A stretch of DNA of 64,000 nucleotides from Thalia democratica (Eukaryota). The position numbers and the translations under genes were made by a program. The stretch covers positions 29,698,001 to 29,762,000 of the forward strand of contig OZ241829.1 of NCBI GenBank assembly GCA_965202585.1. Reading direction: 5' to 3'. Positions 13,001 through 62,470 of this stretch are shown piece after piece. Within the stretch, counting starts at the first letter, position 1. The number at the start of each line of letters is the position of its first letter. The notes under the pieces are model-generated. The model searched no databases and was not told the origin of the DNA. It saw only the letters and a list, made by a program, of their open reading frames with translations.

Positions 13001-15429
13001 ATTAATCGGCGCTGCTGGATATGGCTGAGAGTTCGTTACAGTATGAAAATCATTGCAATCTGAAATTATTTTAGTGCTTTGATCTTTAAATTTTTAAAGT
13101 TTTTTTCAATATTGTTATTTGTTTTTACTTGCTGACGTATATGTGCAATATTCTAAAGTGCATATTATATTAGGATAATTTTTTACGGTAAGATGGCGGT
13201 ACTGATTACATTTATGTAATGAATTATGTAGCTTTAGAAGTTTTCAATATAAAACTTGTGTATTCAAATAAGTTTTAATTACTGTTAGGACTTTAATTAC
13301 GTTCTGTTCTTTAAGTTACCAAAAGTTACAGTAAAACTTCATTTGAATCCGAAAAACTTTAGATTTTTAGACTATGAAAAACTTAACATTTTCGAAATAT
13401 AAATTAAAACAAATTCCACTATGTTAGTGTTTTCAACTTACTTTGGTAACATATGACTTCAGTATCTGGATTGAGCTCGCCGTCATTACAAGTTCTAGTA
13501 TCGTCCCCGGTCAGTGTGTAGTCTTCATTGCATATAAAAGTTACAGTTTCTGAAGAAATATAAACCGTCCTACCGTCTCGAGTATCACCGTTCGCAGGCT
13601 TGGTTATTGTGCACTCTGTTTATAACAGTACTTTGGTTTTAAAGTTTGTAGCAAACAATAATGCTAAAAAGATATAATTTAAAATTTATATTAATTTTAA
13701 TGAAATTTTGCAAGCCGATTTGAACTTCTAACAAACATGTTAAAACCTTTTTATTTGATAAATCTGGTCTAAAAGAGTTTTATTAAAGCTTGAATGTCAA
13801 TAAGTATAACTGAAGCTTAAATACTTTTACTAATTTTACAAAAAAAAAACCACTAAGAAGTGGGTAGCTTCAAATTTACACTACTGTTTTTGATTTACTT
13901 GAAAATCATGCAACTAATTTGCACATTTGCTGAGTCAGCAAAATGTTTTAAAAGCTTTTTTCAATTTTTTTCTATATTTATACCCTTAACTCTTAACTTT
14001 ACCCAAACATTGAAAAAAAATCAAAATTAAAGTTTTATTATTTAAATAAAAAAGTAAACAAGAAAAAAAAATCGCTGACTTATCAAATTTGCAAATTAGT
14101 TGCACGATTTTCAAGTAAGTCAAAAACAGTAGTGGAAATTTGAAGCTAACCAAAAGAAGTTTAACAACCAAAAAATACTCTTATTTAAGTACCTTGTAGT
14201 TGAAAACATGAAAGAGGTTATTTAAAAAGTACAATTGCTTAGTACTACAATACAATGCAAAACAAGTGTGTAAATAAAAAGCTTATGTGCTAAAATTTTC
14301 AATTAAATAATAATTTCAATGTATATGATAAGTAAATTCAAAAAGTCATTAAGATAGAAAAAAGTTGAAGAATTTTATAACTCCTGCTTGAAAATAATTA
14401 GAATACTTAAGTTGTTTTAAACATCGTCTAATAGTATTTTTTTTCTTGATGGTTTGTATAATGAATGTAGAACTTTAAAACAAACCTTAGCTAAAACTGT
14501 ATCATTTCTAACCTTAAGTATTTGATGTTTGAAAGTTATATTCTGCAGAAATCTTAAATAATAATTATTCTATAATCAATTTTATTAGATGTGAAACATC
14601 TCTAAATTTAGGTACCTTAGTGCTGTATAAACTAACAAAAGTACTAAAGGAAAAAATAAAAACAGTTATGTTAATACTTACTCTTTAAGCAACTCATTGG
14701 GTTGGCTGTGTCGAAAGGTGGTGAAAGTGCTCCATTTTGGCAAGTTCTTTTTGGCACATCGGTCGAAAGGGAAGCATACCCTTCTGAACAGTTGTAAGTT
14801 GTACTTTGGCCATGATTAATCGGCGCTGCTGGATATGGCTGAGAGTTCGTTACAGTATGAAAATCATTGCAATCTGAAATTATCTTAGTGCTTTGATCTT
14901 TAAATTTTTAAAGTTTTTTTCAATATTGTTATTTGTTTTTACTTGCTGACGTATATGTGCAATATTCTAAAGTGCATATTATATTAGGATAATTTTTTAC
15001 GGTAAGATGGCGGTACTGATCACATTTATGTAATGAATTATGTAGCTTTAGAAGTTTTCAATATAAAACTTGTGTATTCAAATAAGTTTTAATTACTGTT
15101 AGGACTTTAATTACGTTCTGTTCTTTAAGTTACCAAAAGTTACAGCAAAACTTCATTTGAAGTCTAAAAACTTTAGATTTTTAAACTTTGAAAAGCTTAA
15201 AATATTAGAAATATAATTTAAAACTAATTCCACTATGTTAGTGTTTTCAACTTACTTTGGTAACATATGACTTCAGTATCTGGATTGAGCTCGCCGTCAT
15301 TACAAGTTCTAGTATCGTCCCCGATCAGTGTGTAGTCTTCATCGCATACAAAAGTTACAGTTTCTGAAGAAATATAAACCGTCCTACCGTCTCGAGTATC
15401 ACCGTTCGCAGGCTTGGTTATTGTGCACT
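1015..15429 (-). CDS. 20 repeated sushi/CCP exons (10 x B-A pair, 122 aa per unit) of the left CCP gene
   Basis: A exons (192 nt, phase 1-1; NCNDFHTVTNSQPYPAAPINHGQSTTYNCSEGYASLSTDVPKRTCQNGALSPPFDTANPMSCLK): 1015-1206, 2496-2687, 3978-4169, 5460-5651, 6941-7132, 8422-8613, 9904-10095, 11386-11577, 12868-13059, 14682-14873. B exons (174 nt; KCTITKPANGDTKDGRTVYISSETVTFICNENYTLTGDDTRTCNDGELNPDTEVICYQ): 1589-1762, 3070-3243, 4552-4725, 6034-6207, 7515-7688, 8996-9169, 10478-10651, 11960-12133, 13442-13615, 15256-15429. All have cag acceptors, gtaag donors, 4 Cys and open frames. Confidence 0.93.
13862..14151. mobile_element. 290-bp MITE with about 78-bp TIRs and an imperfect 9-bp TSD (Mutator-like)
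   Basis: GGGTAGCTTCAAATTTACACTACTGTTTTTGA... is mirrored by ...TCAAAAACAGTAGTGGAAATTTGAAGCTAACC. The flanks CTAAGAAGT and AAAAGAAGT match the empty site CAAAGAAGT in the other units. Confidence 0.8.
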
Positions 15430-15879
15430 CTGTTTATAACAGTACTTTGGTTTTAAAGTTTGTAGCAAACAATAATGCTAAAAAGCTATAGTTTGTTTAT
15501 AAGTATTTTATATATTTATTTGATAATTTTACAAGCCATTATTAAATTTTTGAATCTTTAAGGCTTTAACTTTATGTATAACAAAAGATTATGTTTATAA
15601 AACTAAAAAAACTATACTAAAATGAAAGTTGTTGCTTGTTGATAATATAGTTCAAAACTTGGGAAACTTGGTAATTTTTACATATTGCAAATCATTTTCG
15701 TTATTTTGATTTATATATGTAATGACAATTATAAACAGGTACTCATTAAGAAATTTAAGTTTCCTCTCAAACTTACCTCTTGGACCAATCGTAGGCATTA
15801 AGAAAAAGAACGGCAAATAAAAAAACACAAGCACAGATGTTGAACTATCCAAGGAAACAGAAATAAACCTCAAACGAAC

Positions 15880-34512: not shown

Positions 34513-34700
34513 TTAAACGAGCACAAATTCAATCTGACCGTTGTATTCCAAATCACCAGTGAACTGCACGTCGTTTTGGTACTGGTGGTTGAAGTACTCG
34601 AACCTTTCGAGCGTGAACTCGTCGGCCGCCACAGTTTCCTTCTTGTATTCTTTGAACGACAGCTCGAACTTTGCCTTCACTCCGCTCGGGTTGTAAACTC
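34513..34700 (-). CDS. PL13-like domain, last exon (G-V-Y with the putative catalytic Tyr)
   Basis: GVYNPSGVKAKFELSFKEYKKETVAADEFTLERFEYFNHQYQNDVQFTGDLEYNGQIEFVLV*; completes the KF|GVY motif across the intron; internal phase-1 donors also exist. Confidence 0.8.
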
Positions 34701-35382
34701 CTTAAAAATACACGTGAGATGTGCAGGTATAAAGAAATGCAGTGACGAGGTTTTAAAAAGCTCAAAAAATAAAATGCAGCAGGGACACCAATAGCGTATC
34801 TGCTTTAAGAGATCTTAATCTAAAAAATGAATGGGGTTAAAAAATTATAAAAAAGCTATGATACTGTTTAAACGAATAAGAAAACTAATCTTAAAGATAT
34901 AAAGATTTTTATCGTTGTGTTAGTGTATAATAAAACTGTAAATTACTTTATTAAACACAAAAAAAATAAACAGAAAAACTTGATGTGCGTAGCAAAAAAT
35001 AGTTCAGTTTAGTTTATTTCGGTTTTATAAATTAATTCATAATTAGTTCAAATACAAAACTACTATTAAAAAAAAGTCTAATAACTCTGAAATAAGTGTG
35101 AATAGGCAACATTTTTTATCAAAAGTAAGTAAATATAAGCTGTAATAATTAATATTACTTTTATAATTATAACTAAACTTTTAAAAACTAAAATGTTCTC
35201 AAAACGGTAAGGTACGCATTTCACGTAAAGTACACACTTTTATATGGTTTCTTGGTGCGTACCCTACCAATGTCATTACTTTATTCGTTTTTAGATAAAT
35301 ACAAAATACAACCATGAGCTTTGTGACTAGTTTTTTTTTCAAAGCTGGTATTAATTGTTTCCAAACTTCTCGTGAAACCAAC

Positions 35383-35545
35383 CGAACTTAATGTAAGGAA
35401 CTCTCCCTTGCGCGTTTGCCCCGATAATAACCGGCAACTGATAATCGAGGTAAGAAGATTGCAGCTTGCCGTTAACTTTCAACTTCATTAAACCGTTCCA
35501 CGTTCGGATACCGGGGTCTCCAGTGCGACCGAGACGTTCCATTTC
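35383..35545 (-). CDS. PL13-like domain exon
   Basis: EMERLGRTGDPGIRTWNGLMKLKVNGKLQSSYLDYQLPVIIGANAQGRVPYIKF(G); phase 0-1; cf. heparinase I ILIGRNDEDGYYFKFG as recalled. Confidence 0.85.
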
Positions 35546-35829
35546 CTAGTTTAACTTTTAGCTATCATTTTAATGCTTGATGATAAACTTTAAACATTTT
35601 AATCTTCCTACTAGCTTAAGCTACTAGTATATAATTTCTCGTTAATTAGAAACTCTATAGACTTTATCTTATTTTATTAAAAAACAGGTCTAAAGTTCTT
35701 GTAAAAAACTTTCAATAATATTTTAATACAATTTGTTGCTTGTTTTTCATTTAAGTGACTGCACCTGAAATATCTAATACTTTATAAATTTCTAAGCTAG
35801 TTAAATTAAGTAAAAAAAAATCAAATAAC

Positions 35830-35934
35830 TTCATCTGTAAGGAGACCGTACTCGCCCCAATTTATAATCCACTCAAATTCAGTCCATTCCTGCTCTTCGA
35901 GAACATCTAGCGGAATTTCGTGAAGAATAATCGC
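35830..35934 (-). CDS. PL13-like domain exon
   Basis: AIILHEIPLDVLEEQEWTEFEWIINWGEYGLLTDE; phase 0-0; cf. TIAYKLPFADFPKDCWITFRVHIDWTVYG. Confidence 0.85.
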
Positions 35935-36223
35935 CTAAAAAAAAGAAAAAATAAAGAAAATATTTTTAGAAATAATAAAGAAATATCTTTTTAGCGTTTT
36001 ATGTTGAAAATAAAGTTTGAAACTAAGTTGAATTTCTTTTCGTTAGAACTTTTTAGAAAAACTTAACTCTAAATGGAAACAAGTCTGTCAATTTTAAATT
36101 TGCCCAGATATTATTATTTTACACAATAAACCCTTTTTTTTTGTTCTGATAAGATAAACTAGCAAAATGTTATGTAAGCTTAACTTTTAGTATAATATTT
36201 TAAAAACAAAGTGATAAAACAAC

Positions 36224-36339
36224 GTGTTGTTCGGCCCGACCGTCTTCAACGCACACAACTTTTTTCATCCCACTCATTCGGCACTTTCCTTCAGTTTTGA
36301 AGTACCTTTCGTCCGATCTTGCTGTCACTGTCAGCTTGC
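36224..36339 (-). CDS. PL13-like domain exon
   Basis: SKLTVTARSDERYFKTEGKCRMSGMKKVVCVEDGRAEQH; phase 1-0; cf. LFYIKANSDRKWLTDKDDRC. Confidence 0.83.
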
Positions 36340-37308
36340 CTGCAAGAGCAGTTTGTTGTAATTTAATTTTTACACGCTAGCCTAAAACAATAAAAATAAA
36401 TTGTTTACCAAAAAATTAAGCAGTGGTATGCTGTTCTATATAATTGTACACTTTTAAAAATGTTTCAAAAATCACATTATTACTAGTTTCAGCATCAAAA
36501 CATTTTCGTAATTTACCTTACATTAAGTTGTTTTGTAACGATATGTATATTCTGTTGTTTTTTTAAATGACCGCCTAGGGGCGTTAGATGATTGTTTATC
36601 AAATCACATAATAAAACTTTAATAGTTTTTGTTTTTACGCTCAGTTAGCCATAAGACCGTGCGGAGGGCACACCAAATTTAAGACTTTGAGACACCAATT
36701 GAACTTAAGAACTTTTTAATGATGTTCATTTTATAAGAACTTTATTTTATTTGTATTATTTTGTTGCATTGTGCTTAGTTTAGTCATCGTTGTGCATGAA
36801 GTACGACATATATTAAAACTCTGTATTACAAGTAAAACCTATTTTTGTATTTAAGATTGTGACATTCAGACAGTTTTAGAACGTTATTAAGAACATTTTT
36901 AGTTGTAGAATTTTGTGTCTACTTGTTGTGTTTATTTTCCCAGTTGTATTCTACTGATATAGTAGCTGCTCTATCACTTCTACTTTCTAGTTTCCATATT
37001 AATATTACTTTTTCAATAAACTCACTTCATTAAAGAAACTATACATATTAAGTTTATTACATATTTAATAGTTACTAAGTTAAACCTAATGAGTAAGGTA
37101 AATTCAGTAAAAGCCTTAAGAGCTAATCACTCAAAGCGTTCAGCTCAAAAAAGGGGACTTCCCCCAATTAAAAATAGTTCCTACCACTGGTTTAAGGCTA
37201 CAGTTTTACAAACAGAGTCATAGCTTATTTCGTATATAACTTCGTACACGTAAAAATCTAAAAATTGCAAACTAATTTCTATATTACATATCATTTCAAA
37301 CAACTAAC

Positions 37309-37389
37309 TCTTGTTCCTGTCGTAATGAACTGAAAGAAGGGGGTGTCCCCCTCTCTGAAAGCTTATTCGCTCCCCTCCCGCTTCGAAAC
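37309..37389 (-). CDS. PL13-like domain exon
   Basis: GFEAGGERISFQRGGHPLLSVHYDRNK; 81 nt, phase 1-1; cf. WLVEQGGYPPLAFGF. Confidence 0.83.
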
Positions 37390-37584
37390 CTGAACGCGTA
37401 GAATAATAATCAAATTAATCTGATTAACTTTTGTAGTTTCCTTAAAAGTTAACGTTTAGTATTTAATTTAGTATTAATACTAATAAACAGTTTCATACAC
37501 TATTTCAAAGATAAATTAAACACTTGTAAATAGACTTGAACATGGAGGCGATCACCACAAAAAAAATAGAAAAAAATCACCAAC

Positions 37585-37860
37585 CGGCCGCGTGCTCGCA
37601 CGGGAAATGGGAGCATCCCCTGAACAGCTCCTCATTGGTCAGCCGTATCGGAACGGGGTCTTCCCCCACGGTGATGACGCGAGGGTCGGGCGAGTTGTGC
37701 CACTGAGTGATCATCACCCGCCGCATGGCCGCTCCGGCCTCACCCGATTGGACGAGGTCTCTCAGTTTCATCTTGTACTTGTACACGTGGCTGGCGTGTC
37801 GCGTCATCGGCTCGTTGGCCGCCGGGCACAGCGTTTGGAGGAGGGGCGGCATGACCGGGC
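37585..37860 (-). CDS. PL13-like domain exon with QWH (putative catalytic His)
   Basis: SPVMPPLLQTLCPAANEPMTRHASHVYKYKMKLRDLVQSGEAGAAMRRVMITQWHNSPDPRVITVGEDPVPIRLTNEELFRGCSHFPCEHAA; 276 nt, phase 1-1; cf. ACPQG..YEFSVYIP..IFAQWHGMPDRTLVQTPQGEVKKLTVDEF. Confidence 0.88.
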
Positions 37861-38807
37861 CTGTGTGACGTAATAACGCTTGGGGTGATAATGTGTGACG
37901 TAAAATTTGTGTGGTAAGAATGGGTGATGTCTGATGAACAAACGAGTTTGATAAAATTTTGTTAACTTTAAATGACAGTGAAAATCTATATTGAAGATTG
38001 CTAATTTTTTTGTAACTGGTAGCAGGTGTGTTAAACATTGATTTTTTCATAATATTTAGTCAATACTTTTCTTGAAGTTTTGGAACTATTTGTTAGAATT
38101 TTAAGCAGTTTATTAAACTTATATCTTTTAATCATTTCTGCAATAAATCCAGTGAAAAATTTGATGAAATAGTTGTGAATAAAAACGTTTAGAGATGAGA
38201 TTGTAGAAGTATAACGACATATTTTCATACAAAAATTTTTCTAAACTTTAGCTTTTAAAACAGTTACAGCTAATGAAAAGTACATTAAAATAAAACTTAG
38301 ATAAACACTTTAATATTGAAAATTATTTCTCTATATCAATGGTCTTCAAGGCGTGCACATTTAGGTTAATTTGCTGTATATAAAAAAGTTACAATGGTTA
38401 AAAAAAATGCAAATGACGTTTTTTGTTTTTTTCTATGGGAAAAAGTTAATGATAACACAAACTAACAGTTTTTAGCACGTTATTCATATATTCTATCTCA
38501 TAAAACCAAAATAAATTCTTGTTCTTGATAACAACTTACATTTTAATAGTCTAGTTTGCAAATAATTTATTTTTCAGTAATTTAGTGTGCACAGTGTTTG
38601 AAAATATTAAAAACCAATGCTCTAGAGTCATTAAATGTTTACTTGACAACAACAAAAATTAAAAAGCTAAAATTGTTTTAAGGTATTAAAAATAAATTGA
38701 GAAGGTTTATTTAAAAGTTTTTAAACATTCAGTTTATAGTAGACGTTTTCTGATACTGTCGAAGTATCTGTTGAAAATAAAATAAATAATTTTAAAACAA
38801 AAAATAC

Positions 38808-38944
38808 TTTTTATAAGGAAATTGTTGTTTATATCATTGTTAGTGACGTTTTCTTTGAAATATTTTTCAGTTACAAAACACGTGCTGATCTCTATCCTGG
38901 ACTTTTCATCTTTTTTTTTATTATCCAAGTTGTCGTATACAAAC
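38808..38944 (-). CDS. PL13-like domain exon
   Basis: (R)FVYDNLDNKKKDEKSRIEISTCFVTEKYFKENVTNNDINNNFLIK; phase 2-1; cf. KGRAEFSYCYATSDDF. Confidence 0.8.
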
Positions 38945-39361
38945 CTAAAATAAATATGAAACTTTGCTTTTTTTACTCTAGTCGTTTAGCAGTCAAAAAC
39001 CGCTTACGTTTTTATTGAATTTTATATATCAACAAAACAAGTTTAAGCACAATAACTTTTTAAACAACTTTAAAATATTTGTATGATACCACGTTAGTTA
39101 ATTTTATAAAATTTTGGTTCTAAAACCTTTGAACATTTAATAGCTGTAAAAATGTCTACTCTTTTAAAGAGAAACAACATGAACAGCAACCAGTGAATTA
39201 AAGTTTTTACACACTACTACAATAGTTCTAGACATACTAATATAAACTAAGTTGAAAATAGTTATAATGTTTACAGTTTTTAGTTTTATAGGCTAAAAAT
39301 GAGAAAACTTGCACTTATAATCTATTCAGGTATAAGATATTTAAAACAAATGACGAAGTAC

Positions 39362-39479
39362 CTGTACTGATAGGAAGGTTCACTGTTTTCATTTATGGGA
39401 AAATACTTTTCAATGTAAAATTTTGTCTTTTTACTGTTTGAAATTTTCAGTAAAACAAAATTACCTGGAAGAACCTGTT
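39362..39479 (-). CDS. PL13-like domain, first exon
   Basis: EQVLPGNFVLLKISNSKKTKFYIEKYFPINENSEPSYQY(R); phase 1-2; cf. NQIIDGCWVAV...DGKPSYRF. Confidence 0.75.
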
Positions 39480-39681
39480 CTGTAAGTACATTAAATTTTT
39501 TTTTTTTGAAGAAACGTTCTTAGCTTTTTTGTTTTTTACGCCAAGTAATAAGTACACTTTATTTACAATCAGTAACATAATTTTTGATAAAAGTTTTAAA
39601 ATGCAATAATTGTAAAACATTTCTATAACTACATACGAAAATCCTACAAAGTTATCTCTTAGTTTCTGATTTACTTCAAAC

Positions 39682-39813
39682 CTTCCCTGACCAGTTTCAA
39701 GAACGGTCTCGATTTCGGCCACTTGTTGCAAGTGAAATTCGATGAGGCCGCCTTGAGACCGGTGCAGTCCCATATTTCACCAGATTTAGTTTTATTTCTC
39801 AACAGTTTAATAC
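39682..39813 (-). CDS. Linker exon between the EGF and lyase-like domains
   Basis: SIKLLRNKTKSGEIWDCTGLKAASSNFTCNKWPKSRPFLKLVRE; 132 nt, phase 1-1, open from the aaacag acceptor; the ORF track shows a different frame. Confidence 0.7.
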
Positions 39814-39940
39814 CTGTTTGCAAGGATTAGTAGATTAACTTTAAAAGAAAGCTAAAAAAAAACGTAAGTCAAATTAAAAGCGATCCTAGCTGTTTTTGTT
39901 TTAGAAAGATGGCTACTGTACGACTGGATAACCAATAACT

Positions 39941-40012
39941 GTGGTGTGAAACTCGATAACTAAAAGGTTTCTTCATACACCAGGTGCTTAAACCAGACTT
40001 TTTGGACGCTTT
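39941..40012. repeat. Short dispersed repeat, similar to 46035-46090
   Basis: Shared GTGGTGTG..ACTCGATAAC..AAA.GTTT.TTC.T.CAC.AGGT.CT.A core at both sites. Confidence 0.45.
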
Positions 40013-40457
40013 TTTTTTATCGTTTTATAACCAATATATACACACTGCCGTAGGGGATGTTCAACATCACTGGTTAAAAATATATACTACGGTCATCTAA
40101 AATGAATGCTGTAACAAATTAAACCTTATTTATAAATAAAAATTTTATATGTAAACAAAGTTGAGAACCTTAACAAAATATTTAACATTAAAAGAGTTTA
40201 GTTTGGGTTTTTGACATAAAGCAAGTTAAAAGAATATTCAATTTGTTTTTTACTTCTAACACAAAAGTACTACTTAAGTTTAAAAACCCTTTTATTAAAG
40301 TTTGTGTTAAACGCATACTGTGATTAAACTACTTTTACTTCTAAAGTAATATGCAATGGTCTTTTGTACAACTCTCTTCCTGAAACTTTGTTAACAAATG
40401 TAAAAAATAGTAACAGTTACCACATAAAATTTTTGCATGCAAAACAAACAAACTGAC

Positions 40458-40583
40458 TGCAACTCAACCCATCTCCTTGGAAACCAGGGTTGCACATACA
40501 CTTGTAATACTCCTTATTCTCGTAGTTGTATTTCAAGCAGTAAGCATCTGCGTGACAAAACTGACAAACGTCTTTTTCAAATC
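40458..40583 (-). CDS. EGF-like domain exon
   Basis: FEKDVCQFCHADAYCLKYNYENKEYYKCMCNPGFQGDGLSC: 6 Cys with a CxCxxGFxGDGxxC ending; 126 nt, phase 1-1. Confidence 0.9.
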
Positions 40584-41121: not shown

Positions 41122-41219
41122 TAGTTATTTTAAATCCTTTGGTTTCGTCATTTAAGCAAAAACCATCGACTTCATAGGTTTCACACTTGTCTTCTCTACC
41201 ACCAAAAGCTAGGGTTGAA
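41122..41219 (-). CDS. Candidate N-terminal exon of the EGF-lyase gene
   Basis: STLAFGGREDKCETYEVDGFCLNDETKGFKIT after a ttttaatag acceptor. The donor is weak (gtagtt) and the upstream ATG exon was not found. Confidence 0.45.
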
Positions 41220-41892
41220 CTATTAAAATAAAAAACACATTTTAATTATCAAAATATTTTGATTTAAGAAAAAACAAAAAACAGTTATATAATACAAATA
41301 TAGTTATATAGTATAAATAAAACAGTTATATAATAGTTTAAAATTCCTAACATATAGTTTTTCAACAATAATTAATCAACTTAAAAAATAATACATACTT
41401 AAAAAATCTTTTAAGTCAATTAGTTAAAGTCATTTCAAATAGAGACCTCAAATCTATACTCTTTTAAAGTCAAAAAATATATTCTGAAATAAAAACCTTA
41501 ATGTTTATCAAGACTTTTCAATTATACAGTCTAAACAAGTTATAACAAAAATCTGTCAAATAAATATCTTTCAAATTAATATTTTATTCGCTATGCCAAG
41601 AAAACTTTTATATGTATTCCATTCAAAAAAAAAACTTCCTTCGTAGAAACGGACTTGTTTATGTATACATTAACTTATTGAAAATAATTTAAGGAGTGTT
41701 TTTTCTACAAATAAACTTCAGTTTCTTTTTTAATATTCAAGTAAATATAAGTTAAAAATAATTAAGTTCTGTTAAACGCAATTCCGTTGATGTAATAAAC
41801 TGAAACCTTATGTTTAAGTTTATCGTAAGATTGATTGTATTTATCAAATTTTACCCATCGTGTGTAGTCTATATAGTACTAATACTTAGTAG

Positions 41893-44498
41893 CAGTGGCG
41901 TAGCGTGGTATTTTGGTCAGGGGGTGCGCAAGTTTTTTCTCAAAAAATCCTCTAATTTAAAACTTCTGGGCCGCAAATTTTTCGAAGTCAATTTTCTCGG
42001 AAATTTAAAAAAATACTAAAAATCTATCTCCTACTTCATTTTTCAAGCAACCTTCTTCAAATTAAAAAAATAATTTCTTACGTTACAAGAAAAAAACGTT
42101 ACTTATGAATTAAGATAATTAAAAAAAAAAGTCTTTTTTTTTCAGAAAAAATATATTTTACTACAAATTTTTTAATTCACAAGTAATGTTTTTTTTATTG
42201 TATAAAGATTAAACTGTTAAAGTTTGAAGAAGATTTCTAGAAAAATGTAGGAGGAGATAGATTTTAAACAAACTAGCCTTTTTCGCTGTTTTAGTTTTCC
42301 CTTCCAATAGGTAACCTATTATGCGGCCCGACTTTGACTGGTCATATCTCAAAAAATAATTAGAACTTTTGAAAAGAATAAAAAGAATCTTAAAGCTTAA
42401 AAAAATCTTTCAAATAAGATCAACTTCTAAAAAACATGGCTTACCCCCCTCCCCTATGGCCTCAAACTACAAATAAATAATCAACTAGTATAACAATTAA
42501 CACCTCAAAACATTTTTCTCTGTGCAATTTCTAAATAATGTTCAATACCCATTTTATATCAACAAAAAAGAATTGTATTAAACTCAAAATAACTCATACT
42601 TTTAGTTTGTTGCAGCTTTTAATATACTATCTTTATCTTTTATATAAAAATGTTAAATCTTCAGTACTAAAATTGTAAATTTTAAATCTATAATTTTTTT
42701 GTAGGAGAAATCTAAAGAGCTAGTTTTTTTTTTTCAACTTCTACATTTTTACCTATATTACAATATAAAACTGTAAAAATAAATCTTAATAAATGAAGAA
42801 AATCTGAAATATAAACATAAAACCTTCATACCACTTGAACTGCAGTCTTGAGTAATAGCAATATCTGGTATTGGTCTGCTATTTTTCAATTCAAGCTTTT
42901 GAAATTCAGATAATTTTCCTACCTGACATATTTTTAGACTTGCAAAATTTCATACAATATTACTTTGCACATTTTAGAAAATAATAATCTAAAAAATAAT
43001 GAAAACAAATGTTTACTTTTTCTTTAATATTATAAAACATATTTTACAAAAAAAAAAAACAAAAAAAAAACTTTAAAGATATCAGGGTTGCCTTGCCACT
43101 CTTTGAGTCAAAATAACTGTCCTGACCCTGAGCTAGTTTAAAAATGTCATAAGTCATCATAAGCATTTTAAATTCTATTACAGAATTTTTTTATTGTTTT
43201 CAAACTAATAGAAACTAAGCTTTATAACAAAGCTTTTAAAACCAATAAATCTACCCTGAGTAAAAAAAATAATAATTCTATCCTTAGTCAGCCTGAGCTT
43301 AAAAATACTTAAAAAATTCTGAGTTATCATGATTTTTACTGAGTCATACTAAAGTTTTCCAAAACTTCATAAAATCCTGAGTTATCCTGAGTGTGTGGAA
43401 GGATTTTACTAAATGTTTCTGATACAAAACAAAATGTTTGAAAGATAATTTTTTTAAGGTCAACTTTTTCAATGCTTTTAAAATTCACAAGAAGTATAAT
43501 TTTTCACTTATCTTTAAGTCAGTTTTTCTAAGATCTCTAGAGAAAAGCATTTTTAAATACTACAAACAGTTGGTAGAAAGAAATTTTTTTTAAATATCAT
43601 TTAAAATTTGATTTAAAACAAATAAATTTTAATTTAAAACTAATCAACTATGTCTTTTAGAGTAAAAATTGATTGTAAAAATTTTGTTTTACAGTTGCTA
43701 TAAATTCATTCATGATGTGACTAAAGAAATTTTAAAATTACTTGCTACAAAAATTGATTAATCTTTAAACTTTATGGCTGATAAAATAACAAAGTTTGAT
43801 TTGTTTGTTATCTTAATAAAAAAAAATACTTTAAAAAAAAATTTTAAGTTTAGGTAATTTAAACAATACTTTTTGTATAGTGAGATTAAAACTGTAATCA
43901 CAGTATGAACTGTTTGTTTATCATTTTTTTTATTTTATTTTTTTATTGGTTTCTGTTTTTTTTATTTTTCTTTTAAATTATGTTGTTAATATTTTTTATT
44001 CTTATTATAAATTAGTTTTTATTTATTAGCAGTTGTTTATTGCTATTTTTACTACAGTTTGTTTATTCTTGAATCATTATCACTATAAAACAGGTTTAGC
44101 TTTATGGTTTGTTAACAAAATGTTTGCATTTGTCCTTATAAAAAACCAGTCATAAGGTTATACTACTGCGGTGCACTAACTAGTTGCGTACTGTTTGAGT
44201 CTAAATTCTTATGAAGTTAATGAAGTTAAAAAAATTTTCCTTATGGAGTTTTTCATCAACATCGGTGCGCATTTGCAATTACGCACCGAATCAGTATACT
44301 GGGTAATTTCCCTAACTTGTCACTTATTGGTATTCGAAGTTTCGTTTTACTTTTCGAATAGTAGAAAAACATAGTTGAAAAAAGGCAAATTAAGCAAAAA
44401 AAAAACAATAAAGGATAAAGATACTGCATTTTTTTTTTACTTATTTTTTTTTGGGGTGGCACGCATGCGCCAGCGTCCCTCCCAACGCTACGCCCCTG
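41893..44498. mobile_element. Non-autonomous hAT DNA transposon, 2606 bp
   Basis: TIRs CAGTGGCGTAGCGT and ACGCTACGCCCCTG; perfect 8-bp TSD CTTAGTAG at 41885-41892 and 44499-44506; no transposase ORF. Confidence 0.92.
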
Positions 44499-45446: not shown

Positions 45447-45584
45447 CTAGCAATGGAAAAGCTCAAATCGCAAGGTCCATTGTAGATAGTGTGTTACCAA
45501 AGTGATTCGAAAATATCTTGCAGTAACTGGCACTGGTAGCCTATTGATATGAGGCGTGTCATAGTGTTTATTTGCCATAAAAAT
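45447..45584 (-). CDS. Terminal exon of the right CCP gene; end of the F5/8 type C domain and TAG stop
   Basis: IFMANKHYDTPHINRLPVPVTARYFRITLVTHYLQWTLRFELFHC*, matching the discoidin P..ARY.R....LR.EL.C ending; phase-0 acceptor. Confidence 0.9.
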   Translation of the reverse strand: MFMANKHYDTPHINRLPVPVTARYFRITLVTHYLQWTLRFELFHC

Positions 45585-52954: not shown

Positions 52955-53983
52955 CTGAAATAATATTCAATAAGTTTTTAAGCTTTAATGACTAAAGACA
53001 AATTGATCATCAAATTAAAAACTAATGCTCTCCTCTTGATAATTTTTTTAATGCTTATTGTTTAATAAAGCTGAACAAGTTATCAAAGTAAAACACAAAA
53101 TTAAAACTGTATATGTTTCAGAAATTTATAATTTCTAAATCTACTTATTAAAATACTGTTTTAAAAAACTTAGCATTCTTAGATTTCAATTTGCTTTTAC
53201 ATTACTACTGGCAGATTCTTACTAGTAGTCCCAAGTTGTGTTGCTGAAATTTGAATTACCTTACCTAACAGCTCTAAAACTTAAATGAAATAGTTTTTTT
53301 TATAATTATATTCAATTTCTTCTATACTGCTAAGAATTTATTAAGTAAGCCTATATAAATAGTATATCCATTTTAAAATTAAAATTTTATTTTCAAGATA
53401 TGATTCATTTAAGTTTTTATAACAATTTGAATTGTAAGATTTCAAATGTCGAAATTTAACTGTCAAGTAATTTTATTTACAATATAATACGAAAAATCTA
53501 ACGCTTAGTTAAGTAAGTATTTATAGTTATGCCGCAAAAACTGATAAATCTTTAACTAAACCCATACTTAAAAATAAAAATCACTTAAAAAGTTCAAAGT
53601 TTGATAAAAGACTTATAAAACGCACAATTAAAGTTACCTAAGACTTGTTAATACATTTTAGTGGTAGTTTCGTTGTTACAAACTTTTATTTTTAATTTAA
53701 CTAGATTTTAAGTATACCTCAATTATTGTTTAATTTAGTTACCTTATATTTATGTAAAATGATACAATCACTACGATAGAAAAAGTGGTAATTTAAGTAC
53801 AAAAACTTAATATTGGAACAATAATTAATTCTAAAAATTATATTCTGCAGAAAGCTTAGATAATATAATCTTATAATCAATGTTTATAGATGTGAAATAC
53901 CTCTAAACTTAGATACCTTAGTGTTGTATAAACTAACAAAAGTATTACAAGGAAAAAGTAAAAACAATTATGTTAATACTTAC

Positions 53984-56900
53984 TCTTTAAGCAACTCATT
54001 GGGTTGGCTGTGTCGAAAGGTGGTGAAAGTGCTCCATTTTGGCAAGTTCTTTTTGGCACATCGGTCGAAAGGGAAGCATACCCTTCTGAACAGTTGTAAG
54101 TTGTACTTTGGCCATGATTAATCGGCGCTGCTGGATATGGCTGAGAGTTCGTTACAGTATGAAAATCATTGCAATCTGAAATTATTTTAGTGCTTTGATC
54201 TTTAAATTTTTAAAGTTTTTTTCAATATTGTTATTTGTTTTTACTTGCTGACTTATATGTGCAATATTCTAAAGTGCATATTATATTAAGATAGTTTTTT
54301 ACGGTAAGATGGCGGTACTGATTACATTTATGTAATGAATGTAATAGCTTTAGAAGTTTTCAATATAAAACTTTTGTTTTCAAATAAGTTTTAATTACTG
54401 TTAAGACTTTAATTACGTTCTGTTCTTTAAGTTACCAAAAGTTACAGTAAAACTTCATTTGAAGCCGAAAAACTTTAGATTTTTAGACTATGAAAAACTT
54501 AACATTTTAGAAATATGAATTAAAACAAATTCCACTATGTTAGTGTTTTCAACTTACTTTGGTAACATATGACTTCAGTATCTGGATTGAGCTCGCCGTC
54601 ATTACAAGTTCTAGTATCGTCCCCGGTCAGTGTGTAGTTTTCATTGCATTCAAAAGTTACAGTTTCTGAAGAAATATAAACCGTCCTACCGTCTTTAGTA
54701 TCACCGTTCGCAGGCTTGGTTATTGTGCACTCTGTTTATAACAGTACTTTGGTTTTAAAGTTTGTAGCAAACAATAATGCTTAAAAGCTATAATTTAAGA
54801 TTTATATCAATTTTAATGAAATTTTGCAAGCCGAATTGAACTTCTAACAAACATGTTAAAACCTTTTTGTTTGATAAACTTGAATAAGTATAACTGAAGC
54901 TGAAACACTTTTATTAATTTTACAAAAAAAAAACACAAAGAAGTTAAAAAACCAAAAAATACTCTTATTTAAGTACCTTGTAGTTGAAAACATGAAAGAG
55001 GTTATTTAAAAAGTACAATTGCTTAGTACTACAATACAATGCAAAACAAGTATGTAAATAAAAAGCTTATGTGCTAAAATTTTTAATTAAATAATAATTT
55101 CAATGTATATGATAAGTAAATTCAAAAAGTTATTAAGATAGAAGAAAGTTGAAGAATTTTATAACTCCTGCTTAAAAATAATTAGAATACTTAAGTTGTT
55201 TTAAACATCGTCTAATAGTATTTTTTTTCATGATGGTTTATATAACGAGTGTAGAACTTTAAAACAAACCTTAGCTAAATTGTATCATTTCTAACCTTAA
55301 GTATTTGATGTTTGAAAGTTATATTCTGCAGAAAGCTTAGATAATATAATCTTATAATCAATGTTTATAGATGTGAAATACCTCGAAACTTAGATACCTT
55401 AGTGTTGTATAAACTAACAAAAGTATTACAAGGAAAAAGTAAAAACAATTATGTTAATACTTACTCTTTAAGCAACTCATTGGGTTGGCTGTGTCGAAAG
55501 GTGGTGAAAGTGCTCCATTTTGGCAAGTTCTTTTTGGCACATCGGTCGAAAGGGAAGCATACCCTTCCGAACAGTTGTAAGTTGTACTTTGGCCATGATT
55601 AATCGGCGCTGCTGGATATGGCTGAGAGTTCGTTACAGTATGAAAATCATTGCAATCTGAAATTATTTTAGTGCTTTGATCTTTAAATTTTTAAAGTTTT
55701 TTTCAATATTGTTATTTGTTTTTACTTGCTGACTTATATGTGCAATATTCTAAAGTGCATATTATATTAAGATAGTTTTTTACGGTAAGATGGCGGTACT
55801 GATTACATTTATGTAATGAATGTAATAGCTTTAGAAGTTTTCAATATAAAACTTTTGTTTTCAAATAAGTTTTAATTACTGTTAAGACTTTAATTACGTT
55901 CTGTTCTTTAAGTTACCAAAAGTTACAGTAAAACTTCATTTGAAGCCGAAAAACTTTAGATTTTTAGACTATGAAAAACTTAACATTTTAGAAATATGAA
56001 TTAAAACAAATTCCACTATGTTAGTGTTTTCAACTTACTTTGGTAACATATGACTTCAGTATCTGGATTGAGCTCGCCGTCATTACAAGTTCTAGTGTCG
56101 TCCCCGGTCAGTGTGTAGTTTTCATTGCATTCAAAAGTTACAGTTTCTGAAGAAATATAAACCGTCCTACCGTCTTTAGTATCACCGTTCGCAGGCTTGG
56201 TTATTGTGCACTCTGTTTATAACAGTACTTTGGTTTTAAAGTTTGTAGCAAACAATAATGCTTAAAAGCTATAATTTAAGATTTATATCAATTTTAATGA
56301 AATTTTGCAAGCCGAATTGAACTTCTAACAAACATGTTAAAACCTTTTTGTTTGATAAACTTGAATAAGTATAACTGAAGCTGAAACACTTTTATTAATT
56401 TTACAAAAAAAAAAACACAAAGAAGTTAAAAAACCAAAAAATACTCTTATTTAAGTACCTTGTAGTTGAAAACATGAAAGAGGTTATTTAAAAAGTACAA
56501 TTGCTTAGTACTACAATACAATGCAAAACAAGTATGTAAATAAAAAGCTTATGTGCTAAAATTTTTAAATAAATAATAATTTCAATGTATATGATAAGTA
56601 AATTCAAAAAGTTATTAAGATAGAAGAAAGTTGAAGAATTTTATAACTCCTGCTTAAAAATAATTAGAATACTTAAGTTGTTTTAAACATCGTCTAATAG
56701 TATTTTTTTTCATGATGGTTTATATAACGAGTGTAGAACTTTAAAACAAACCTTAGCTAAATTGTATCATTTCTAACCTTAAGTATTTGATGTTTGAAAG
56801 TTATATTCTGCAGAAAACTTAAATAATAATTATTCTATAATCAATTTTATTAGATGTGAAACATCTCTAAATTTCGGTACCTTAGTGCTGTATAAACTAA

Positions 56901-59900
56901 CAAAAGTACTAAAGGAAAAAATAAAAACAGTTATGTTAATACTTACTCTTTAAGCAACTCATTGGGTTGGCTGTGTCGAAAGGTGGTGAAAGTGCTCCAT
57001 TTTGGCAAGTTCTTTTTGGCACATCGGTCGAAAGGGAAGCATACCCTTCTGAACAGTTGTAAGTTGTACTTTGGCCATGATTAATCGGCGCTGCTGGATA
57101 TGGCTGAGAGTTCGTTACAGTATGAAAATCATTGCAATCTGAAATTATTTTAGTGCTTTGATCTTTAAATTTTTAAAGTTTTTTTCAATATTGTTATTTG
57201 TTTTTACTTGCTGACTTATATGTGCAATATTCTAAAGTGCATATTATATTAAGATAGTTTTTTACGGTAAGATGGCGGTACTGATTACATTTATGTAATG
57301 AATGTAATAGCTTTAGAAGTTTTCAATATAAAACTTGTGTATTCAAATAAGTTTTAATTACTGTTAGGACTTTAATTACGTTCTGTTCTTTAAGTTACCA
57401 AAAGTTACAGTAAAACTTCATTTGAATCCGAAAAACTTTAGATTTTTAGACTATGAAAAACTTAACATTTTAGAAATATAAATTAAAACAAATTCCACTA
57501 TGTTAGTGTTTTCAACTTACTTTGGTAACATATGACTTCAGTATCTGGATTGAGCTGGCCGTCATTACAAGTTCTAGTATCGTCCCCGGTCAGTGTGTAG
57601 TTTTCATTGCATATAAAAGTTACAGTTTCTGAAGAAATATAAACCGTCCTACCGTCTTTAGTATCACCGTTCGCAGGCTTGGTTATTGTGCACTCTGTTT
57701 ATAACAGTACTTTGGTTTTAAAGTTTGTAGCAAACAATAATGCTTAAAAGCTATAATTTAAGATTTATATCAATTTTAATGAAATTTTGCAAGCCGAATT
57801 GAACTTCTAACAAACATGTTAAAACCTTTTTGTTTGATAAACTTGAATAAGTATAACTGAAGCTGAAACACTTTTATTAATTTTACAAAAAAAAAAACAC
57901 AAAGAAGTTAAAAAACCAAAAAATACTCTTATTTAAGTACCTTGTAGTTGAAAACATGAAAGAGGTTATTTAAAAAGTACAATTGCTTAGTACTACAATA
58001 CAATGCAAAACAAGTATGTAAATAAAAAGCTTATGTGCTAAAATTTTCAATTAAATAATAATTTCAATGTATATGATAAGTAAATTCAAAAAGTTATTAA
58101 GATAGAAGAAAGTTGAAGAATTTTATAACTCCTGCTTAAAAATAATTAGAATACTTAGTTGTTTTAAACATCGTCCAATAGTATTTTTTTTCTTGATGGT
58201 TTGTATAACGAGTGTAGAACTTTAAAACAAACCTTAGCTAAATTGTATCATTTCTAACCTTAAGTATTTGATGTTTGAAAGTTATATTCTGCAGAAAACT
58301 TAAATAATAATTATTCTATAATCAATTTTATTAGATGTGAAACATCTCTAAATTTAGGTACCTTAGTGCTGTATAAACTAACAAAAGTACTAAAGGAAAA
58401 AATAAAAACAGTTATGTTAATACTTACTCTTTAAGCAACTCATTGGGTTGGCTGTGTCGAAAGGTGGTGAAAGTGCTCCATTTTGGCAAGTTCTTTTTGG
58501 CACATCGGTCGAAAGGGAAGCATACCCTTCTGAACAGTTGTAAGTTGTACTTTGGCCATGATTAATCGGCGCTGCTGGATATGGCTGAGAGTTCGTTACA
58601 GTATGAAAATCATTGCAATCTGAAATTATTTTAGTGCTTTGATCTTTAAATTTTTAAAGTTTTTTTCAATATTGTTATTTGTTTTTACTTGCTGACGTAT
58701 ATGTGCAATATTCTAAAGTGCATATTATATTAGGATAATTTTTTACGGTAAGATGGCGGTACTGATTACATTTATGTAATGAATTATGTAGCTTTAGAAG
58801 TTTTCAATATAAAACTTGTGTATTCAAATAAGTTTTAATTACTGTTAGACTTTAATTACGTTCTGTTCTTTAAGTTACCAAAAGTTACAGTAAAACTTCA
58901 TTTGAATCCGAAAAACTTTAGATTTTTAGACTATGAAAAACTTAACATTTTAGAAATATAAATTAAAACAAATTCCACTATGTTAGTGTTTTCAACTTAC
59001 TTTGGTAACATATGACTTCAGTATCTGGATTGAGCTCGCCGTCATTACAAGTTCTAGTATCGTCCCCGGTCAGTGTGTAGTTTTCATTGCATTCAAAAGT
59101 TACAGTTTCTGAAGAAATATAAACCGTCCTACCGTCTTTAGTATCACCGTTCGCAGGCTTGGTTATTGTGCACTCTGTTTATAACAGTACTTTGGTTTTA
59201 AAGTTTGTAGCAAACAATAATGCTTAAAAGCTATAATTTAAGATTTATATCAATTTTAATGAAATTTTGCAAGCCGAATTGAACTTCTAACAAACATGTT
59301 AAAACCTTTTTGTTTGATAAACTTGAATAAGTATAACTGAAGCTGAAACACTTTTATTAATTTTACAAAAAAAAAAACACAAAGAAGTTAAAAAACCAAA
59401 AAATACTCTTATTTAAGTACCTTGTAGTTGAAAACATGAAAGAGGTTATTTAAAAAGTACAATTGCTTAGTACTACAATACAATGCAAAACAAGTATGTA
59501 AATAAAAAGCTTATGTGCTAAAATTTTCAATTAAATAATAATTTCAATGTATATGATAAGTAAATTCAAAAAGTTATTAAGATAGAAGAAAGTTGAAGAA
59601 TTTTATAACTCCTGCTTAAAAATAATTAGAATACTTAAGTTGTTTTAAACATCGTCCAATAGTATTTTTTTTCTTGATGGTTTGTATAACGAGTGTAGAA
59701 CTTTAAAACAAACCTTAGCTAAATTGTATCATTTCTAACCTTAAGTATTTGATGTTTGAAAGTTATATTCTGCAGAAAACTTAAATAATAATTATTCTAT
59801 AATCAATTTTATTAGATGTGAAACATCTCTAAATTTAGGTACCTTAGTGCTGTATAAACTAACAAAAGTACTAAAGGAAAAAATAAAAACAGTTATGTTA

Positions 59901-62470
59901 ATACTTACTCTTTAAGCAACTCATTGGGTTGGCTGTGTCGAAAGGTGGTGAAAGTGCTCCATTTTGGCAAGTTCTTTTTGGCACATCGGTCGAAAGGGAA
60001 GCATACCCTTCTGAACAGTTGTAAGTTGTACTTTGGCCATGATTAATCGGCGCTGCTGGATATGGCTGAGAGTTCGTTACAGTATGAAAATCATTGCAAT
60101 CTGAAATTATTTTAGTGCTTTGATCTTTAAATTTTTAAAGTTTTTTTCAATATTGTTATTTGTTTTTACTTGCTGACGTATATGTGCAATATTCTAAAGT
60201 GCATATTATATTAGGATAATTTTTTACGGTAAGATGGCGGTACTGATTACATTTATGTAATGAATTATGTAGCTTTAGAAGTTTTCAATATAAAACTTGT
60301 GTATTCAAATAAGTTTTAATTACTGTTAGGACTTTAATTACGTTCTGTTCTTTAAGTTACCAAAAGTTACAGTAAAACTTCATTTGAATCCGAAAAACTT
60401 TAGATTTTTAGACTATGAAAAACTTAACATTTTAGAAATATAAATTAAAACAAATTCCACTATGTTAGTGTTTTCAACTTACTTTGGTAACATATGACTT
60501 CAGTATCTGGATTGAGCTCGCCGTCATTACAAGTTCTAGTATCGTCCCCGGTCAGTGTGTAGTCTTCATTGCATATAAAAGTTACAGTTTCTGAAGAAAT
60601 ATAAACCGTCCTACCGTCTCGAGTATCACCGTTCGCAGGCTTGGTTATTGTGCACTCTGTTTATAACAGTACTTTGGTTTTAAAGTTTGTAGCAAACAAT
60701 AATGCTAAAAAGATATAATTTAAAATTTATATTAATTTTAATGAAATTTTGCAAGCCGATTTGAACTTCTAACAAACATGTTAAAACCTTTTTATTTGAT
60801 AAATCTGGTCTAAAAGAGTTTTATTAAAGCTTGAATGTCAATAAGTATAACTGAAGCTTAAATACTTTTACTAATTTTACAAAAAAAAAACCACTAAGAA
60901 GTGGGTAGCTTCAAATTTACACTACTGTTTTTGATTTACTTGAAAATCATTCAACTAATTTGCACATTTGCTGAGTCAGCAAAATGTTTTAAAAGCTTTT
61001 TTCAATTTTTTTCTATATTTATACCCTTAACTCTTAACTTTACCCAAACATTGAAAAAAAATCAAAATTAAAGTTTTATTATTTAAATAAAAAAGTAAAC
61101 AAGAAAAAAAAATCGCTGACTTATCAAATTTGCAAATTAGTTGCACGATTTTCAAGTAAGTCAAAAACAGTAGTGGAAATTTGAAGCTAACCAAAAGAAG
61201 TTTAACAACCAAAAAATACTCTTATTTAAGTACCTTGTAGTTGAAAACATGAAAGAGGTTATTTAAAAAGTACAATTGCTTAGTACTACAATACAATGCA
61301 AAACAAGTGTGTAAATAAAAAGCTTATGTGCTAAAATTTTCAATTAAATAATAATTTCAATGTATATGATAAGTAAATTCAAAAAGTCATTAAGATAGAA
61401 AAAAGTTGAAGAATTTTATAACTCCTGCTTGAAAATAATTAGAATACTTAAGTTGTTTTAAACATCGTCTAATAGTATTTTTTTTCTTGATGGTTTGTAT
61501 AATGAATGTAGAACTTTAAAACAAACCTTAGCTAAAACTGTATCATTTCTAACCTTAAGTATTTGATGTTTGAAAGTTATATTCTGCAGAAATCTTAAAT
61601 AATAATTATTTTATAATCAATTTCATTAGATGTCAAACACCTCTAAATTTAGGTACCTTAGTGTTGTGTAAACTATCATAAGTATTAAAGGAAAAAGTAA
61701 AAACAATTATGTTAATACTTACTCTTTAAGCAACTCATTGGGTTGGCTGTGTCGAAAGGTGGTGAAAGTGCTCCATTTTGGCAAGTTCTTTTTGGCACAT
61801 CGGTCGAAAGGGAAGCATACCCTTCTGAACAGTTGTAAGTTGTACTTTGGCCATGATTAATCGGCGCTGCTGGATATGGTTGAGAGTTCGTCACAGTATG
61901 AAAATAATTGCAATCTGAAATTATTTTAGTGCTTTGATCTTTAAATTTTTAAAGTATTTTTCAATATTGTTATTTTTTTTTACTTGCTGACATATATGTG
62001 CAATATTCTAAAGTGCATATTATATTAAGATAGTTTTTTACGGTAAGATGGCGGTACTGATCACATTTATGTAATGAATTATGTAGCTTTAGAAGTTTTC
62101 AATATAAAACTTGTGTATTCAAATAAGTTTTAATTACTGTTAGGACTTTAATTACGTTCTGTTCTTTAAGTTACCAAAAGTTACAGCAAAACTTCATTTG
62201 AAGTCTAAAAACTTTAGATTTTTAAACTTTGAAAAGCTTAAAATATTAGAAATATGAATTAAAACAAATTCCACTATGTTAGTGTTTTCAACTTACTTTG
62301 GTAACATATGACTTCAGTATCTGGATTGAGCTCGCCGTCATTACAAGTTCTAGTATCGTCCCCGATCAGTGTGTAGTCTTCATCGCATACAAAAGTTACA
62401 GTTTCTGAAGAAATATAAACCGTCCTACCGTCTTTAGTATCACCGTTCGCAGGCTTGGTTATTGTGCACT
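53984..62470 (-). CDS. 12 repeated CCP exons (6 x B-A pair), right gene
   Basis: A: 53984-54175, 55465-55656, 56947-57138, 58428-58619, 59909-60100, 61723-61914. B: 54558-54731, 56039-56212, 57521-57694, 59001-59174, 60483-60656, 62297-62470. All are open with intact splice sites. Confidence 0.93.
60903..61192. mobile_element. Second copy of the 290-bp Mutator-like MITE
   Basis: Same TIRs and same position as 13862-14151 (offset 47041). Confidence 0.8.

Follow-up and report, generated by a model that had tools for sequence, protein, structure and literature searches.

To our knowledge, glycosaminoglycan lyases are regarded as microbial enzymes, and animals degrade heparan sulfate with hydrolases. 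A locus in the genome of Thalia democratica raises the question of whether an animal can also own a lyase of the bacterial heparinase type. The stretch analysed here is 64,000 nucleotides long (positions 29,698,001 to 29,762,000 of the forward strand of contig OZ241829.1, assembly GCA_965202585.1) and is called the window below; unless another contig is named, all coordinates refer to it. On its minus strand, at 34513-40583 for the ten listed exons, lies a gene that the initial annotation had described, from the letters alone, as an intron-containing animal gene joining an EGF domain to a domain like that of heparin lyase I, the polysaccharide lyase family PL13. A mechanical check of the borders found AG before and GT after each of the ten exons, and the joined exons, with the third base as start, form a single open frame of 479 codons that ends in a TAA stop codon. 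The intron phases calculated from the exon lengths are 1,1,2,1,1,1,0,0,1, of which the seven within the lyase-like part (exons 3-10) are 2,1,1,1,0,0,1, so that the ten exons, the open frame and the phases first proposed are all borne out. Between these exons lie nine GT-AG introns, and the gene extends at least one exon further 5', to a probable upstream exon. We favour, with moderate confidence, the reading that this is a functional spliced gene for an active polysaccharide lyase of bacterial origin.

Relationship to heparin lyase I

For comparison, bacterial heparinase I genes were taken from metagenome contigs by the motif FAQWHGMPD. One open reading frame (ORF) obtained in this way (L053:604-1779) is the heparin lyase I of Bacteroides thetaiotaomicron (3IKW, 880 bits; PF14099, 96 bits), and its motifs include KPSYRF, GRAEFSYCY, ACPQG..YEFSVFI, FAQWHGMPD, EQGGYPPL, ANSDRKW, WITFRVHIDWTVYG and LIGRN..YYFKFGIY. 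The heparinase I motifs that the initial annotation had named are thus genuine, and those of the window protein align with them in the order it had given. A hidden Markov model (HMM) of heparinase I scores the spliced window protein at 29.4 bits in two colinear pieces (residues 85-421), compared with a maximum of 9.9 bits in a shuffle control (n=2000), while a Vibrio-type PF14099 HMM reaches only 11.9 bits. Conversely, an HMM of the animal family gives 50-66 bits to heparinase I, 9-25 bits to the Vibrio-type lyases and at most 9 bits to other PF14099 ORFs from the phylum of Vibrio. Profile-profile alignment of the animal family with heparinase I by hhalign has a probability of 98.7% and an E value of 1.5e-16 over 315 columns (heparinase I residues 43-389 of 392), with only about 21% identity between the window protein and bacterial heparinase I.

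Searches of the PDB (177,635 sequences) with family profiles of single exons point the same way. The top four matches of the exon-5 profile (A2) are heparin lyase I at E values of about 0.3, in an alignment centred on Q-[WF]-H..PD, and the top five of the exon 6+7 profile (A5) are again heparin lyase I (E 1.3e-5 to 3e-4), aligned on GGYPPL...A-x-SD. Exon 5 alone had no match in the PDB, the exon 8+9 profile found no heparinase there, and a look-up of exon 5 in the ESM Atlas gave no usable match. NCBIfam has no heparinase I model, as even the positive control had no match there. In Pfam, the exons of the paralogues described below match PF14099 only and are colinear with the model (13-26 bits, E 1.3e-5 to 0.07), the single exon 8+9 of the paralogues covering model positions 135-192 at E 1.3e-5. 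A gammaproteobacterial match (L031) was discarded as a glycosyltransferase in which only the string ISQWHNSPDP is in common, by chance. The similarity is hence significant over the catalytic domain by HMM, hhalign and PDB profile, as expected of a member of CAZy PL13. Taken together, these comparisons support homology of exons 3-10 to heparin lyase I over nearly the whole length of the enzyme, a relationship narrower than membership of the broad PF14099, and a beta-jelly-roll fold may be predicted from the near full-length profile alignment.

Conservation of the catalytic residues

The catalytic residues of heparinase I, which we take to be Gln149, His151 and Tyr357 in the numbering of B. thetaiotaomicron and whose roles were reportedly described by Han and colleagues in 2009, can be placed on the alignment. 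As a check of the numbering, Q165 and H167 of L053 become 149 and 151 after subtraction of a 16-residue offset. The window protein has equivalents of all three (Q223, H225 and Y420), as do all aligned paralogues, most of which have QFH instead of QWH; in the exon-5 alignment of the family Q, H and D never vary, and the Cys of the S-x-C-F motif is conserved in every aligned member. Moreover, the family retains PSY, K-S-R-x-E-x-S-x-C-F, the Cys of LCP, Y-x-Y, Q-[WF]-H..PD, GGYPPL (GGHPLL in the window protein), A-R-SD, W..EW.I.W.EYG, DPG and PY[FI]KFG[VI]Y.

Selection on the coding sequence

The genome (801.8 Mb, about 28% GC) contains three tandem copies of the gene on contig C5, with spacings of about 53 kb and about 45 kb. 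Over 6.7 kb copy A has 99.88% identity and is thereby uninformative for selection; it stems either from a very recent duplication or from duplication in the assembly. Copy C and the window copy share 94.6% identity. Over 1442 exonic bases these two differ by 1.7% with 0 indels, compared with 4.1% and 137 gapped positions in non-coding and intron sequence, and the codon changes comprise 16 synonymous and 8 non-synonymous ones, corresponding to a ratio of non-synonymous to synonymous rates (dN/dS) of about 0.16 as estimated from counts.

A profile of one family exon led to exon-sized fragments in marine metagenomes and from these to the contigs L208 and L209 (about 28% GC), which carry an orthologue from a different organism. 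In this orthologue the full set of exons 1-10 occurs in unchanged order, and all AG and GT dinucleotides are retained. The exons are 88-96% identical to it in nucleotide sequence, compared with about 76-78% in regions that include introns, and over 478 codons dS is 0.35, dN 0.036 and dN/dS 0.10. Furthermore, three sequencing runs of unrecorded kind contain the locus; they behave as DNA (genomic unitigs, introns included), have no joints at the predicted exon borders, and 8 of the 11 exon variants listed from them are synonymous. Because the orthologue conserves exons and splice sites, the ten exons including the one for EGF can be taken as parts of one selected coding gene. Judged by these evolutionary tests, the gene is functional and under purifying selection, and the domestication that the initial annotation had assumed gains support from this and from the splice sites conserved in the orthologue.

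The gene family and its origin

The gene belongs to a family of about 13-14 loci on four chromosome-sized contigs. In the diverged paralogues exons 6+7 and exons 8+9 are each fused into a single exon, so the introns 6|7 and 8|9 are specific to the window type, and at least four intron positions (4|5, 5|6, 7|8 and 9|10) are common to the window gene and the diverged paralogues. These shared positions imply that the introns predate the diversification of the family and point to an old event. No EGF exon was found within 5 kb of the diverged paralogues. The EGF fusion originally claimed was thus seen in the window-type subfamily only, and what had been described as a single gene is a multi-copy family; for the window type itself, an intron-containing animal gene with a PL13-like domain fused to EGF is upheld by the HMMs, profiles, residues and tree.

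Among individual members, paralogue L021 lies 3.3 Mb upstream. Three loci (C5:17960097-17960296, C1:36246912-36247106 and C1:49159640-49160349) have in-frame stops or split matches in exon 8+9 and are probably pseudogenes or copies with extra introns. A 14-kb marine metagenome contig with a paralogue-type member also carries an intronless ORF for a protein kinase of 292 residues (L205:730-1608).

PF14099 loci were sampled from 301 genomes of the phylum of Vibrio and from 401 genomes of a phylum taken to be Bacteroidota. The domain is patchy in both (8/301 and 19/401 genomes). Among the 27 PF14099 loci of the 401 Bacteroidota genomes the animal profile recognises only two true heparinase I ORFs, so that genes of the heparinase I type occur in 2 of these 401 genomes and in none of the 301 from the other phylum. 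Their bacterial neighbourhoods are glycosaminoglycan-utilisation loci with genes for SusD, PL8 and heparinase II/III. The maximum-likelihood tree, an analysis that had been suggested from the start, unites the animal sequences in one clade (100/99), with heparinase I as its starred sister group (99/96), and this grouping leaves out the Vibrio-type, PVC-type and other PF14099 proteins sampled.

On the eukaryotic side, where the queries were exon-sized, a profile search seeded with shared words, run on 5.8 billion protein clusters for proteins of 241-768 residues (3213 candidates), returned bacterial proteins only and no full-length eukaryotic relative. A phmmer search with exon 5 against 1.84 billion representatives gave just two genuine matches, both short marine fragments; its three top matches are repetitive bacterial surface proteins and were rejected as spurious. 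The only eukaryote-like relatives found lie, as fragments, on AT-rich contigs from marine metagenomes, Tara Oceans samples among them. Within the host, the family lies on host chromosomes, has host-like introns and composition (the flanking DNA has 24-30% GC, matching the rest of the window) and is under purifying selection. The horizontal transfer proposed by the initial annotation agrees with the sister position to heparinase I and with the lack of a full-length eukaryotic relative in these searches, but nesting inside a bacterial clade was not found, and the transfer is argued from distribution instead. On these comparisons of sequences, the family was most likely captured from bacteria long ago, by one entry into the animal lineage.

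Proposed function and alternative explanations

In the mechanism that we propose, at least one cysteine-containing exon and the EGF domain stand at the N-terminus of a protein that is probably secreted or located on the cell surface; since EGF domains are extracellular, entry into the secretory pathway is probable. The main body would be a beta-jelly-roll domain sharing a common ancestor with bacterial heparin lyase I, in which the Gln would neutralise the uronate carboxylate and the His and Tyr would act as base and acid, so that a uronic-acid-containing glycan would be cut by beta-elimination. In its substrate and its calcium dependence the protein would probably depart from the bacterial enzymes, which are specific for heparin. 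Its role may lie in the digestion of dietary polyuronates or in remodelling the matrix of the animal itself. In evolutionary terms, a single bacterial entry may have been followed by intron gain, by expansion to the present number of loci and by gain of the EGF exon in the window-type branch. A working beta-eliminase is suggested because the catalytic set is kept in a family that is 60-70% diverged and under strong purifying selection.

Several points weigh against an active lyase of bacterial origin. Searched singly in Pfam, the window exons match EGF only and give no PF14099 match, and the paralogue exons stay under the PF14099 cut-off (25.6 vs 29.9 bits). The 5' end of the window gene is incomplete, with neither a start codon nor a signal peptide found, and no RNA run in the index contains the locus, which leaves expression and junctions without read support. 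The animal clade is sister to the sampled heparinase I and not nested in it, on branches of 1.89 and 0.85 substitutions per site, and the bacterial sampling consisted of two phyla plus gut-metagenome heparinases chosen by exact motif. The thumb and the calcium site have changed as well. In the heparinase I of Bacteroides eggerthii the thumb comprises residues 176-241 and forms a basic substrate cleft, calcium is bound by the side chains of Glu240 and Asp364 and the carbonyls of Trp266 and Asn363, and the sulfate-binding residues include Lys259 and Asn275 (PMC13714783). In the animal protein the alignment of the thumb is confined to its two ends; about 45 lysine-rich residues are missing between them, and a short Cys-x(3-4)-Cys loop stands in their place, unlike the thumb of PL13. 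Of the calcium ligands, Glu240 is replaced by Gln, Asp364 by Ala and Trp266 by Tyr, with Asn363 kept; paralogue L025 alone keeps the Glu (EQGGYPPL). Several sulfate-binding residues, e.g. Lys259 and Asn275, are not conserved in the animal family either. With the basic thumb and the calcium site gone, the substrate is probably not highly sulfated heparin and catalysis probably independent of calcium, or else these proteins only bind glycans. Heparin itself is accordingly a doubtful substrate in our reading of the alignment, and the changes could mean lost activity instead of changed specificity.

That last possibility leads to the most serious alternative, which we nevertheless consider rather unlikely, namely that the heparinase I-derived domain is now non-catalytic and serves, with EGF, as a lectin-like glycan-binding or structural extracellular module, e.g. 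in the tunic, in mucus nets or in immunity. Replacement of both acidic calcium ligands and deletion of much of the heparin-gripping thumb, parts whose roles are described for the B. eggerthii enzyme (PMC13714783), would fit such a module, as would the QFH of most paralogues, and recognition proteins, too, typically expand into families such as the present one of about 13-14 loci. In a pure binder, however, one would not expect the Gln, His, Tyr and the S-x-C-F Cys to be kept across deep splits of the family, and the dN/dS of 0.10 indicates strong constraint, though it is silent on what is constrained. An improbable alternative concerns the origin: the gene could be an old eukaryotic one that nearly all lineages have lost, could come from another eukaryote or a virus, or could have passed from eukaryotes to bacteria, without any bacterial acquisition by the animal lineage. 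The sister position without nesting, the low identity to heparinase I, the exon-sized queries that limited the eukaryote searches, and the four or more intron positions common across the deepest animal split, which mark the gene as long eukaryotic, are all compatible with this. Opposed to it are the 3213 candidates without a full-length eukaryotic relative, the two marine fragments as sole return of the exon-5 search, the ordinary bacterial context of heparinase I and the diversity of PF14099 in bacteria.

Still less probable is a decaying or unexpressed relic, or a set of three near-identical copies produced by the assembly. The missing RNA, the near identity of copy A, which may reflect a collapsed or duplicated haplotype, the stop codons in some family loci and the different exon 0 acceptor of the window copy could be read in this way, but both dN/dS values, the exons free of indels, the splice sites all kept between species and the excess of synonymous variants in the DNA runs speak for a maintained gene. 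As for an assembly contaminated with bacterial DNA, it is indeed in bacteria that the closest characterised relatives occur, but the nine GT-AG introns refute it, and the host-like GC content of the flanks, the spread over four chromosome-sized contigs, the fusion of the lyase part to an EGF exon and the distance from bacterial heparinase I leave it a negligible chance. We therefore return to the active lyase of bacterial origin as the preferred reading. Its extension, that pelagic tunicates own active PL13-type eliminases, domesticated from bacteria and multiplied into a family, is offered more tentatively, as a proposal about as open to doubt as to acceptance.

Features of the gene and its surroundings

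The coordinates of the features are collected in Table 1. Exon 0 is the weakest part of the gene model. Its stretch is kept in copy C and in the orthologous contig L208, neither of which resembles the window copy beyond about 41207. No more than 75% of its amino acids are identical in L208, and it has no Pfam match. At 41207-41221 the acceptor ttttag|GTGG of copy C and the orthologue reads ttttgGTGG in the window copy, where an alternative AG 6 nt upstream preserves the phase, and upstream of this site the window copy has no similarity to copy C or the orthologue. A hydrophobic exon candidate with an ATG at 44351-44429 on the minus strand was rejected as a signal peptide, because it is unsupported and AT-rich DNA yields such frames by chance.

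Table 1. Exons, catalytic residue equivalents and tandem copies of the lyase-like gene (L208 and L209, orthologous contigs).
Feature	Position	Strand	Description	Conservation
Exon 0 (probable, upstream)	41122..41208	-	87 nt, phase 1 at both ends, open frame with no start codon within; encodes ..FGGREDKCETYEVDGFCLNDETKGFKIT; cysteine-containing	
Exon 1	40458..40583	-	EGF-like domain, six cysteines; member of Pfam PF12947 EGF_3 (30.6 bits, cut-off 28.5)	93% amino-acid identity to L208 orthologue, both splice sites conserved
Exon 2	39682..39813	-	linker; ends ..FTCNKWPKSRPFLKLVREE, where the heparinase I-alignable region begins	0 differences from copy C; amino acids 85% identical in L208; an upstream exon of paralogue L027 is weakly similar
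Exon 3	39362..39479	-	first strands of lyase-like domain; ..EPSYQY vs heparinase I KPSYRF	splice sites conserved in L208
Exon 4	38808..38944	-	KSRIEISTCF vs heparinase I KGRAEFSYCY; conserved Cys at residue 147	KSRLELSSCF in paralogues
Exon 5	37585..37860	-	LCP..YKYKMKL and ITQWHNSPD; start of shortened thumb with C-x4-C pair	
Q223 (exon 5)	37703-37705	-	equivalent of Gln149	
H225 (exon 5)	37697-37699	-	equivalent of His151	
Exon 6	37309..37389	-	QRGGHPLL vs heparinase I EQGGYPPL; calcium-ligand Glu replaced by Gln274	
Exon 7	36224..36339	-	TARSDERYF..KC vs heparinase I KANSDRKWLTDKDDRC	
Exon 8	35830..35934	-	WTEFEWIINWGEYG vs heparinase I WITFRVHIDWTVYG	
Exon 9	35383..35545	-	IIGANAQGRVPYIKF vs heparinase I LIGRNDEDGYYFKF; calcium-ligand Asp replaced by Ala408	95-96% nucleotide identity to L208 and L209, splice sites conserved
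Exon 10	34513..34700	-	G(V)YNPSG motif, then C-terminal tail (absent from heparinase I) and stop codon 34513-34515	about 90% amino-acid identity to L209
Y420 (exon 10)	34693-34695	-	equivalent of catalytic Tyr357	
Tandem copy (L016)	C5:29677500-29687499			
Tandem copy (L017)	C5:29775500-29785499			

The gene region is flanked by two arrays (865-15494 and 53093-62535) of a tandem repeat of about 1,481 bp, whose copies are 95-99.5% alike. Each unit holds one short ORF and belongs to no Rfam family, and the repeat has the look of a macrosatellite without coding function. Nothing in the window was reported by Rfam or by Tandem Repeats Finder, the period of about 1,481 bp being too long for the latter. 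In intron 6 (36560-37360) the summed contig depth in the three DNA runs rises from about 200 to 10,000-110,000, and in intron 1 (about 39760-40160) it reaches about 1,000-5,000 in three DNA runs; these high-copy repeats are probably fragments of transposable elements. Upstream lies the last exon of a neighbouring gene on the same strand (45450-45578, minus), in which an F5/8 type C (discoidin) domain (PF00754, E 3.4e-5) reaches its C-terminus. A stop codon directly after this domain separates the neighbour from the lyase gene. The F5/8 type C domain is also present in some bacterial PF14099 proteins (P0039).

Comparison with known systems

The closest known system is heparin lyase I (B. thetaiotaomicron BT4675, PDB 3IKW, 3ILR, 3IMN and 3INA; B. 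eggerthii, 9GRW), with which the animal protein is colinear over residues 43-389 of the enzyme and has in common PSY, K-x-R-x-E-x-S-x-C, QWH..PD, GGYPPL, A-x-SD, W..W..YG and YFKFG-x-Y. Unlike it, the animal protein has an N-terminal EGF domain and a C-terminal tail of about 45-60 residues, and its gene is multi-copy and interrupted by nine or more introns. To the same superfamily belong other PF14099 proteins, e.g. the 274-residue lyase of Vibrio ishigakensis (L032) and, from Verrucomicrobiota and Planctomycetota, the PF24517+PF14099 proteins P0027-P0034; QWH..PD and PYFK-x-GIY are motifs that they have in common with the animal family. They lack the thumb as well as the GGYPPL and ARSD segments, score 9-25 bits or nothing against the animal profile, and fall outside the clade of the animal family and heparinase I.

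The heparinase enzyme family and domesticated bacterial carbohydrate enzymes in animals are already known. What is new is that the heparinase I lineage has a branch in an animal, in which the thumb is remodelled, the calcium ligands are gone, EGF is fused on and the family has expanded. None of the literature searched describes a PL13-type or PF14099 gene from a tunicate or any other animal, and the main text of a 2026 compendium of metazoan horizontal transfers mentions neither heparin nor tunicates. If an animal has a PL13-type family that is under selection, bears introns and exists in many copies, this would alter the microbial-only picture and would add a well-defined bacterial gene capture in a chordate relative. 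In addition, naturally occurring variants of heparinase I in which the thumb is rebuilt and the calcium site lost would be of interest for enzyme engineering and heparin analytics.

Animal heparanase (GH79) acts as a hydrolase, has a TIM-barrel fold and shows no relationship in sequence. The protein described here may overlap with it in substrate class (heparan-sulfate-like glycans) and in its extracellular location, whereas it would act by beta-elimination. If this is true, animals would be able to break down or remodel heparan-like or other uronic-acid glycans by means of a lyase. The classic bacterial-to-tunicate transfer is that of the cellulose synthase CesA and GH6 genes (PMC6523144, PMC7464555). 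As in that case, a bacterial polysaccharide-active enzyme would have turned into an intron-bearing, selected animal gene; in contrast to it, the enzyme is a lyase and neither a synthase nor a hydrolase, and the gene has so far been seen only here and on related marine metagenome contigs. If the proposal holds, it would be the second case, after cellulose synthase, of a bacterial polysaccharide enzyme entering tunicate biology.

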